Shown piece after piece: positions 13,561 to 15,489 of a stretch of 64,000 nucleotides of DNA. The notes under the pieces were generated by a model, which did not search any database, had not been told where the DNA came from, and worked only from the letters and a program-made list of their open reading frames with translations. The position numbers and the translations under genes were made by a program. Source of the stretch: Vitrella brassicaformis CCMP3155 (taxonomy: Eukaryota; Protista; Chromerida); assembly GCA_001179505.1 (NCBI GenBank), contig CDMY01000249.1, forward strand, positions 84,740-148,739. The letters are read 5' to 3'. The first letter of the stretch is position 1. Each line of letters opens with the position of its first letter.

Positions 13561-13803
13561 CATCTCTTGCTGGGGCTGATGCCAATGCGCGGCGACGGAA
13601 GCGCTTGAAAGGCGACGCAGGGGCGCCCCGACGGGGAGGGGGCGAGACGGCAGCAGCGGTTTCAGGGAGCACCCGGGGCGAGACGGCTGGTTGCGAGCTT
13701 AGCGCACATTTGCTGTGGGGAGGGGACCAGCTTTTCGCCCAGACCTTGCCTTGTCGATACGAGAGGGCAAGGGCATACTCAACAAACGAGGAGACTACGA
13801 GGT

Positions 13804-14931
13804 ATGCAGTCACTGAAGTCGTCCAGCAAGAGCCTTCACGAGCTCAGTGCCAAGGCACTCGACGGGTGAGTACAGTACAAGAGCAACAGCGCCGCACAGC
13901 AGGCGAGGAAGTGATTCATGTCGTGTGTCTGTGTGTCTGTGTGTCTGTGTGTCTGTGTGTCTGTGTGCGTGTGTGGGAATGTCTACGACACGCAGGGCCA
14001 CGGTCAACTTCAAGGACTATGCGGGCAAGGTCCTGCTCGTCACCAACGTGGCATCCAAATGAGGCCTCACCGAGGTGACAACAACACCACACCACACAAG
14101 AGGCCCTTCAAGCGGTATTCTTCACCCACCGCCTGTCTGTCTGTCTGTCTGGGTGGATGGCTTCAGACCCACTACACCCAATTCACGGAGATCTGGCAGC
14201 AGTATCAGGACCGCTTCAAGGGAGGGGAGGAGGAGGGCGGCTTCGAGATATTCGCTTTCCCGTGCGCTCAGTTTGCCAACGAGGTAGGTAGGTAGGTAGG
14301 CAGGCTGCAGGCTGCCAGGCTGCACGTGGTGTGGTGACTGACATTCGGCTGGCAGGAGTTCCCGGACGCGGCCGACATCAAGAAATTCGTCGCGGCCTAC
14401 AACATCCCTGAGAAATACAACGTCAGAATGATGGAGAAAATCGACGGTGCGTCGGTCGTGTCGGGTTACTCGCCAGGCCATTCAGGCCATTGGTCGATCT
14501 CGTTGCATGGGTGGGTGTTGCCTTGTCGGTGTGGGTGCAGTGAACGGCCCGAATATGCATCCGGTGTTCTCGTTCCTCAAGTACCACTCCAGCCTCTATG
14601 ACGACCAGTCCAATGCGGCCAGTCCGATCTCGTGGAACTTCGGTCAGTCACCAGAAACAAGGACAGACAGAAACGACAGCGATTGACACACACGAGACGA
14701 GACGAGACAGACGCTCCTGCGTCTGTTGGTCGTCAATTACCAGGGAAGTTTTTGGTGGACCAGGACGGCCATGTCGTGAAGTACTACGGGCCCGAAGTCA
14801 TGCCTAAGTAAGTGAAGCGACCACCGTTGATGTCACGAACCTCTCTCTCTGTCACGTTGCCATTCCCAACTGTTAGGTCGCTCATTCCGGACATCGACCA
14901 GGTCATCGCTCGTGCGCCGCCCCCACAGTGA
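13804..14931 (+). CDS. GPX: Selenocysteine-containing glutathione peroxidase, multi-exon
   Basis: Spliced: MQSLKSSSKSLHELSAKALDG-ATVNFKDYAGKVLLVTNVASK(TGA 14060-14062)GLTE...AFPCAQFANEE...VNG...HPVFSFLK...ISWNFGKFLVDQDG...IARAPPPQ*. Start codon is tentative. Confidence 0.93.
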
Positions 14932-15010
14932 ACAATCGAAAGAGAGAGGTAGCCCTGACGCCGTCTCCCCCTCCGCCCTCCTGCCCCCATCTTCGCTTGC
15001 CTTGCCGCGG

Positions 15011-15061
15011 ATGATGGCTGCACCGTCAAACCCCCTACAGCGGGGCTCGGTGCGGCCTGAG
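15011..15061 (+). promoter_or_regulatory. Eukaryotic SECIS element (type II) in the GPx 3'UTR
   Basis: ATGAT core, helix ggctgcaccg (15016-25) pairing with cggtgcggcc (15048-57), unpaired AAA (15028-30), cccc/gggg mini-helix and a closing TGAG, ~80 nt after the stop. Confidence 0.92.
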
Positions 15062-15489
15062 AGCTTCTCTGGCCTGTTGGTCTGCTGTGTGGCTCCCTAT
15101 GGGTGTAGGGGGGGGCTGCGCCGCCGGCCGGTGGAAAGGGGAGGAGAGCGAGGCAACGCGACTTGGGGGAGGGAGGGGGAGAGGGGCATGGGGCTGGCGG
15201 GAAGTCGTGTATGTATTTTGGTATTGTGTATGTGTGTGTGTGTGTTGCGCAAGTCTGTATTTGTCGATCGGTCGATCGTGAGGCTAGGACTGATGGCTGG
15301 ATGGATGAATGGCTGGCTGGCTAGCTGGCTGGATGGCTGGATGGCTGGATGATGGCTGCAATGCAGCTACATGCATGTATTCTGTTTGGATGACTGTGAG
15401 CGACTCGGGATCGATTCAACGCGATTGCTGCTCCGTGTCCATCATTCGCCTCGAGTCATGCGCCCATCCCTCTTAGAAAAGATTCCAAT

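Follow-up and report, generated by a model that had tools for sequence, protein, structure and literature searches.

The glutathione peroxidase (GPx) gene at positions 13804-14931 of the forward strand raises the question of what becomes of a TGA that stands in frame where the family has its peroxidatic residue. Such a codon could be read as selenocysteine (Sec), be read as an ordinary amino acid, be removed by splicing, or be a nonsense mutation that marks the end of a once longer protein. The window, meaning the whole stretch of 64,000 nucleotides that was analyzed, is the end of contig C249 from Vitrella brassicaformis CCMP3155. We hold with high confidence that the gene encodes a 189-residue GPx4-like GPx containing Sec, that its UGA codon 43 is recoded via a type II SECIS, and that it is one of two recent paralogs. 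It is a Sec-GPx of the ordinary, well-known kind, mis-annotated in the public record and with a minor catalytic variant.

Gene structure and transcripts

The coding sequence is divided into 7 exons, separated throughout by introns with GT-AG boundaries, and amounts to 570 nt, which is 189 codons plus the stop. The RNA evidence consists of de novo assembled transcript contigs, which partly mix this gene with its paralog on another contig, C488. They were found by a region-restricted word search with exon 5, giving two ORF fragments, one MMETSP and one JGI; a word search with exon 3 alone gave no candidates. Because the transcript contigs are intron-less relative to the genome, they come from spliced RNA. 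The features of the gene are as follows, with the alignment of relatives named A2 and the three transcript contigs named L018, L019, and L031.

13708-13803, + strand: 5' UTR, the transcribed part seen (L031 positions 1-96, 100% identical)
13804-13865, + strand: exon 1, start ATG at 13804, MQSLKSSSKSLHELSAKALD plus 2 nt (junction of exons 1 and 2 in L031, L018, and L019)
13996-14074, + strand: exon 2, active-site motif NVASK-U-GLT (GSHPx profile 13-32; 100% identical in the C488 paralog)
14060-14062, + strand: in-frame TGA, the Sec codon, peroxidatic residue, Pfam GSHPx column 33 (L018, L019, L031, the C488 paralog, and ciliate homologs)
14167-14283, + strand: exon 3, THYTQ...FAFPCAQFANE (GSHPx profile 39-66)
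14281-14283, + strand: GAG (Glu) at the Gln position of the catalytic tetrad (GAG also in RNA contig L031)
14356-14446, + strand: exon 4, EFPDAADIKKFVAAYNIPEKYNVRMMEKID, without a resolving Cys (5 differences from the C488 paralog, all synonymous)
14541-14642, + strand: exon 5, VNGPNMHPVFSFLK...SWNF (L031 100% identical; W, N, and F invariant in the alignment)
14633-14635 and 14636-14638, + strand: tetrad Trp and Asn, respectively, in SWNFGKF of exon 5 (invariant in A2)
14744-14807, + strand: exon 6, GKFLVDQDGHVVKYYGPEVMPK (100% identity in three RNA contigs)
14877-14931, + strand: exon 7 with stop TGA at 14929-14931 (the C488 paralog has an in-frame 18-nt insertion here)
14932-15439, + strand: 3' UTR, transcribed at least to 15439 (L018 aligns over 14874-15439, L031 over 14874-15169)

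L031, at 904 nt, represents the window copy almost exclusively and matches that copy's own 5' UTR and exon 1 at 100% identity over positions 13708-13866. It also spans 5 of the 6 window-type junctions, has both the TGA and the GAG, and extends through the SECIS in the 3' UTR as far as 15169; there are two C488-type sites at its border between exons 2 and 3. The window-type junction of exons 2 and 3 is present in L018. Along both L018 and L019, blocks that match one genomic copy alternate with blocks that match the other, and L019 has many apparent private differences in its 3' stretch, where the local alignment is poor. We considered a third gene copy as the source of these mosaic transcripts and rejected it, since the genome has two copies only and the transcripts have no private differences in exons 1-6. 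L018 and L019 are assembler chimeras of two expressed paralogs, and thus both copies are expressed.

The preliminary description, made from the genomic letters, had placed a TGA in frame at the peroxidatic position of NVASK-x-GLT and had the frame running on through five further exons, and the transcripts bear out both parts. All three contigs have TGA at this codon, where TGT or TGC would have spoken for an ordinary Cys enzyme, and all six junctions are found in assembled RNA, five of them in L031 and the remaining one in L018, with every intron following the GT-AG rule.

Short tandem repeats crowd the introns and the 3' UTR, namely (TGTGTC)n, (CTGT)n, (GTAG)n, and (GGCTGGAT)n, at window positions 13925-13970, 14135-14150, 14284-14305, and 15290-15350. 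They account for most of the length differences between the window copy and the C488 paralog.

Placing the TGA in the GPx fold

Exon 2 reads ...LLVTNVASK-TGA-GLTE, and profile searches were run exon by exon and with the two natural transcript-derived pieces that flank the TGA. Against Pfam GSHPx (PF00255), whose cut-off is 27 bits, the upstream piece of 42 residues scores 28.3 bits over positions 1-32, and the downstream piece of 146 residues scores 53.9 bits over positions 34-108. Since the first piece ends at profile position 32 and the second begins at 34, the TGA is column 33, the peroxidatic Cys/Sec, and NVASK-TGA-GLT aligns with NVASKCGLT of relatives. Scanned singly against Pfam, exons 2 and 3 match GSHPx in colinear order, exons 1, 5, and 6 give nothing, and exon 4 gives just a chance-level match to a transposase domain (E = 0.22).

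The public gene model

The public protein for this locus, CEL96942.1 (UniRef A0A0G4EK86, 'Glutathione peroxidase', our P0094), has 180 residues and scores 73.8 bits against GSHPx. Its start, like that of the predicted ORF P0095, is identical to the exon 1 product, and over its whole length it is identical to the 189-codon model minus VASKUGLTE. The expectation from the letters alone had been that automated annotation would truncate the gene. That is not what happened; the gene was mis-spliced, with the GT at 14048 taken as a false donor, so that the nine residues including Sec were spliced out.

If the public model were right, a donor at 14048 would be in use, 27 nt would be skipped, and a 180-residue protein would be made with no peroxidatic residue at all. 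In formal terms, the sequence AAC|GTGGCA at 14047/14048 could serve as a donor, and CEL96942.1 was deposited so. None of the three transcript contigs contains the predicted 14047/14167 junction, and each has the full exon 2 with its TGA. The segment to be skipped is, furthermore, the most conserved motif of the family, and the paralogs share exon 2 without a single difference. We give this structure very little credence as a product of the cell, and it is best explained by a gene caller dodging the in-frame stop. The Sec-containing model hence corrects the public record, in which CEL96942.1 and A0A0G4EK86 lack the nine residues that hold the catalytic Sec.

A type II SECIS in the 3' UTR

A SECIS had been reported to follow the gene, and a covariance search finds one there, with all the core motifs.

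15001-15072, + strand: type II SECIS (Rfam SECIS_1, 29.3 bits, E = 0.0014 in an 801-nt search)

The element begins 80 nt after the stop codon. Its parts are AUGA at 15011-15014, a helix II of 10 bp, unpaired AAA at 15028-15030, a mini-stem CCCC/GGGG, and GA at 15059-15060; this layout of AUGA, AAA, mini-stem, and GA makes it type II. The score of 29.3 bits is below the Rfam gathering score of 35. In a genome-wide SECIS_1 scan, in which 121 of 569 candidates were scored, 15001-15072 was the sole match returned. The element lies within the 3' UTR of all three RNA contigs (L018, L019, and L031), and it is kept in the C488 paralog at 25.8 bits, with only four changes, three of them in the apical loop and the fourth in the lower 3' flank.

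A second Sec-GPx locus

The paralog is a second Sec-GPx locus on contig C488 (L017 = G000:C488:81219-84338), with the gene at about 781-2264 of that piece. It shares with the window a segmental duplication of about 1.7 kb, of which there are only two genomic copies.

13816-15482, + strand: segmental duplication common to C488 (L017 1129-2820; blastn 79.8% identity over 1812 aligned columns)

Each copy has seven exons and a SECIS, the TGA occupies the same codon in both, and exons 2-7 have nucleotide identities of 90-100%. They differ in that the C488 copy has Gln (CAG) at the tetrad position, 2 more residues in exon 3, and 6 more in exon 7; it also lies in another genomic neighborhood, where a PsaE gene adjoins on the other strand. 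An extra upstream exon gives the C488 product a hydrophobic, signal-like N-terminal extension (MHVCLPLLVSASVFG...), whereas the window copy starts directly at MQSLK without any extension. We rejected the idea that the C488 copy is a haplotig, because the flanks are unrelated (39% identity over the 5' flank of the gene, 13708-13803), the 5' exons differ, and there are transcripts with distinct 5' ends. In transcripts L018 and L019, the ORF of the C488 copy starts MHVCLPLLVSASVFGSIGRK-MGQVLEV..., that is, with a signal-peptide-like leader and then a second Met-Gly. The leader suggests either plastid or ER targeting or an alternative initiation, and the differing N-termini hint at different compartments for the two copies.

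A pair of copies also permits asking whether the sequence downstream of the TGA is still being translated. Whole in-exon codons were compared between the window copy and the C488 paralog, nearly all of them downstream of the TGA, giving 13.5 synonymous changes over 110 sites and 12.5 non-synonymous changes over 427 sites, with dN/dS = 0.22 and a Fisher p of about 1e-4. The coding indels between the paralogs are 6 and 18 nt, and the intron indels are multiples of three in only 2 of 16. This ratio, together with in-frame indels past the TGA, means that translation beyond the TGA has been under selection.

These comparisons bear on the rival reading of a pseudogene or null allele, in which an earlier Cys-GPx would have acquired the TGA by nonsense mutation and translation would stop after 42 residues. 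TGA is, to be sure, also the codon with which this gene ordinarily stops (14929-14931), and ORF callers do split the transcript there, into P0095 with 42 aa and P0096 with 79 aa. A nonsense mutation sits poorly with finding TGA at the same codon in both paralogs followed by an open frame with the constraint just described, with a SECIS whose core motifs are all conserved in both 3' UTRs, with the Sec machinery described below, and with ciliate homologs that have TGA at the same position. We consider the loss of function very improbable.

Selenocysteine machinery in the genome

Decoding UGA as Sec takes a dedicated apparatus, and the genome (72.7 Mb in 1064 contigs, intron-rich, and addressed by six-frame profile searches) yields four of the six parts expected. 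The tRNA-Sec scores 71.6 bits, and ARAGORN calls it SeC with anticodon TCA. SepSecS is represented by six colinear exon matches covering profile positions 3-371, and SelD by four colinear exon matches whose selD scores sum to about 170 bits. The eEFSec gene is on C473, where the GTPase exon has selB as its best family and an exon farther downstream scores 48.3 bits against Pfam euk_SelB_III. Two of the components that had been singled out as a check on the Sec reading, tRNA-Sec and eEFSec, are thus there, along with SepSecS and SelD, so that the reading does not founder on a missing apparatus. PSTK was not detected with PF08433 or TIGR03575 in six-frame searches, which in an intron-rich genome say nothing about absence.

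The best genome match of the selB model is not on C473 but on C467, and we set that candidate aside as a probable organellar EF-Tu, accepting C473 on the strength of euk_SelB_III. C467 has several tRNA-like matches and an intron-less ORF like EF-Tu/SelB, scoring 178.6 bits over 274 profile positions, and is probably an organellar (plastid) contig. As for SelD, its first two exons match selD better than any other NCBIfam family, and the last two (G000:C464:38630-39848, L010-L012) score slightly better against TIGR04369, an oxidoreductase/SelD-related fusion protein; Vitrella SelD may on that showing be a fusion protein.

The UGA could also be read through by a near-cognate tRNA, for Cys or Trp, yielding a full-length product without selenium. 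The failure to detect PSTK in the six-frame searches is what can be said for this. It leaves unaccounted for a specific SECIS conserved in both copies and the presence of tRNA-Sec, SepSecS, SelD, and eEFSec in the genome, and we regard such readthrough as exceedingly improbable. On the preferred reading, the SECIS in the 3' UTR would direct Sec-tRNA(Sec) and eEFSec to recode UGA codon 43 to Sec.

Active site

The protein has a single Cys, found in FPCAQF. A resolving Cys would be expected on the helix after G-x-Q-E, in a block of the form FAC[TS]xF; the window reads KKFVAAYNIPEKY there, with FVAAYN in place of the block. The Trp and Asn of the catalytic tetrad are present in WNF, and there is no long loop between FLK and WNF. 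Having neither the resolving Cys nor that loop, the protein resembles the monomeric GPx4 type and not the 2-Cys thioredoxin peroxidases, and the window copy's product is probably cytosolic and monomeric. In the chemistry to be expected, the selenolate would reduce hydroperoxides and then be regenerated by thiols. Because the protein lacks a resolving Cys, the reductant would, from established GPx enzymology, most likely be glutathione and not thioredoxin.

The Gln of the tetrad, normally in G-x-Q-E, is replaced by Glu in a stretch reading ANEE, with the exon boundary falling as FANE|E. This substitution had been noted from the letters, and it stands: GAG occupies 14281-14283 in the genome and is likewise found in RNA contig L031. 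Gln is at this position in 13 of the 13 aligned relatives and in the C488 paralog, and since all of these have it, the Glu is derived in the window copy only, by a substitution of one nucleotide (CAG to GAG). The exchange of the catalytic Gln for Glu might make the enzyme less active. It had also been remarked that such a Glu variant is known from plants, and poplar GPX5 (PDB ID: 2p5q) does read GEEE; as that active enzyme has Glu naturally, Glu is a variant within the GPx family and does not exclude the window copy from it. The pair of paralogs, one with Sec and Glu and the other with Sec and Gln, offers, on a small scale, a natural experiment in what the tetrad Gln does.

Relatives and known GPx systems

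Relatives were collected by a search with the open frame that follows Sec in transcript L018, and the top matches were aligned (A2) and a tree was built. The best database match is an ORF of the apicomplexan Rhytidocystis pertsovi, GHVQ01041538.1.p1 (P0003, EukProt EP00921), at 50% identity and E = 9.5e-32, whose source is an apicomplexan transcriptome (PMC7522995). This ORF covers the part that follows Sec, beginning with the first Met downstream of that position, just as the UGA-split Vitrella ORFs do; it has the canonical Gln and groups with Vitrella with an SH-aLRT of 89. An apicomplexan may thus have kept a Sec-GPx. Rhytidocystis is a parasite of a polychaete, and host contamination of the transcriptome is possible.

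The next relatives are a pair of full-length sequences, 204 and 232 aa long, with Cys at the peroxidatic position (NVASKCGLT; L023-L026; JGI 3300042471 and ENA GROS21-1 metagenome scaffolds). Their neighborhood is conserved, gene-dense, apparently intron-poor, and eukaryotic, containing ODAD1, Tim10, phytochelatin synthase, and a WD40 protein. Then come ciliate transcripts (P0007/L030 and P0010/L027) with TGA at the same column. In the tree, 10 rows form a group apart from the plant and bacterial GPxs, with the support of 92 sitting on a fork drawn open, i.e., unresolved. Within those 10 rows, Vitrella, the pair of Cys forms, and Rhytidocystis group together with support of 89 and 82.

The ciliate Sec-GPxs and the Tetrahymena GPx family (PMC7409322) are like the Vitrella gene in being alveolate, in having TGA at the Sec column and an SSLY-type insertion, and in belonging to the same 10-row group; they differ in having 44-48% identity, the ciliate genetic code, and the canonical Gln. 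L027/L028 and L030 are ciliate GPx transcripts with in-frame TAA/TAG (Gln) codons, and L030 ends in a G4T4 telomere repeat. The 3' UTR of L027 has a visible hairpin of the form AUGA...AAA...GA, which Rfam does not report at E up to 1.

With the monomeric GPx4/PHGPx-type Sec-GPxs of animals and algae, the Vitrella protein has in common the Sec in NVAS-x-U-G-x-T, the WNF, the missing tetramer loop between FLK and WNF, the missing resolving Cys, and a SECIS in the 3' UTR. It differs from them by the Glu for the catalytic Gln, by a lineage-specific SSLYDDQS insertion, and by GGEEEGG inserted into exon 3. Among algal selenoproteins, none is more widely distributed than GPX (PMC7539508). Poplar GPX5 (FPCNQFGEEE) is alike in its GPx fold and in its Glu for Gln. 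The plant 2-Cys GPx-like enzymes and PfTPxGl have the same GPx fold but Cys in place of Sec, a resolving Cys in the FAC[TS] block, and dependence on thioredoxin, and the plant forms fall outside the Vitrella group in the tree. PfTPxGl is a GPx-like enzyme of P. falciparum, a relative of Vitrella, and is dually targeted to cytosol and apicoplast (PMC3009606).

Bearing on selenoprotein loss in Apicomplexa

Massive selenoprotein loss in apicomplexans has already been published (PMC2375036), and a literature search found no paper on chromerid selenoproteins. A Sec-GPx together with the Sec machinery means that the closest photosynthetic relatives of the apicomplexan parasites use selenocysteine in a GPx, and Vitrella is a closer reference point for that accepted loss than diatoms are. 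The general understanding of selenoproteins or of GPxs is unchanged by the finding. The preliminary description had set this gene against the Cys-using GPx-like enzyme of Plasmodium and taken the contrast as pointing to loss of Sec in the parasites, which stays a conjecture. Because the nearest match is a Rhytidocystis ORF that starts just past the Sec position, any loss of the Sec-GPx may lie inside Apicomplexa.

A fuller history can be sketched, which we put forward tentatively and with more doubt than belief. After the duplication, the two genes would have divided into a cytosolic copy with Sec and Glu and a signal-peptide (plastid or ER) copy with Sec and Gln; the lineage would have been kept as a Sec enzyme in the early-branching Rhytidocystis; and the switch to Cys, or the loss, would date not from the origin of parasitism but from a point within Apicomplexa. 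If true, two Vitrella genes would do what Plasmodium TPxGl does by dual targeting.

A third GPx-like gene

The sole strong six-frame PF00255 match in the genome (60.5 bits) belongs to neither of the Sec-GPx loci but to a third GPx-like gene, on the minus strand of L001 (G000:C296:77584-80862) at about 1184-1833. Where the family has NVAS-[UC]-G-x-T, this gene reads VIVATRDPHAKEQY, with neither Cys nor Sec at the peroxidatic position, and its product may be a non-peroxidase protein with the GPx fold.
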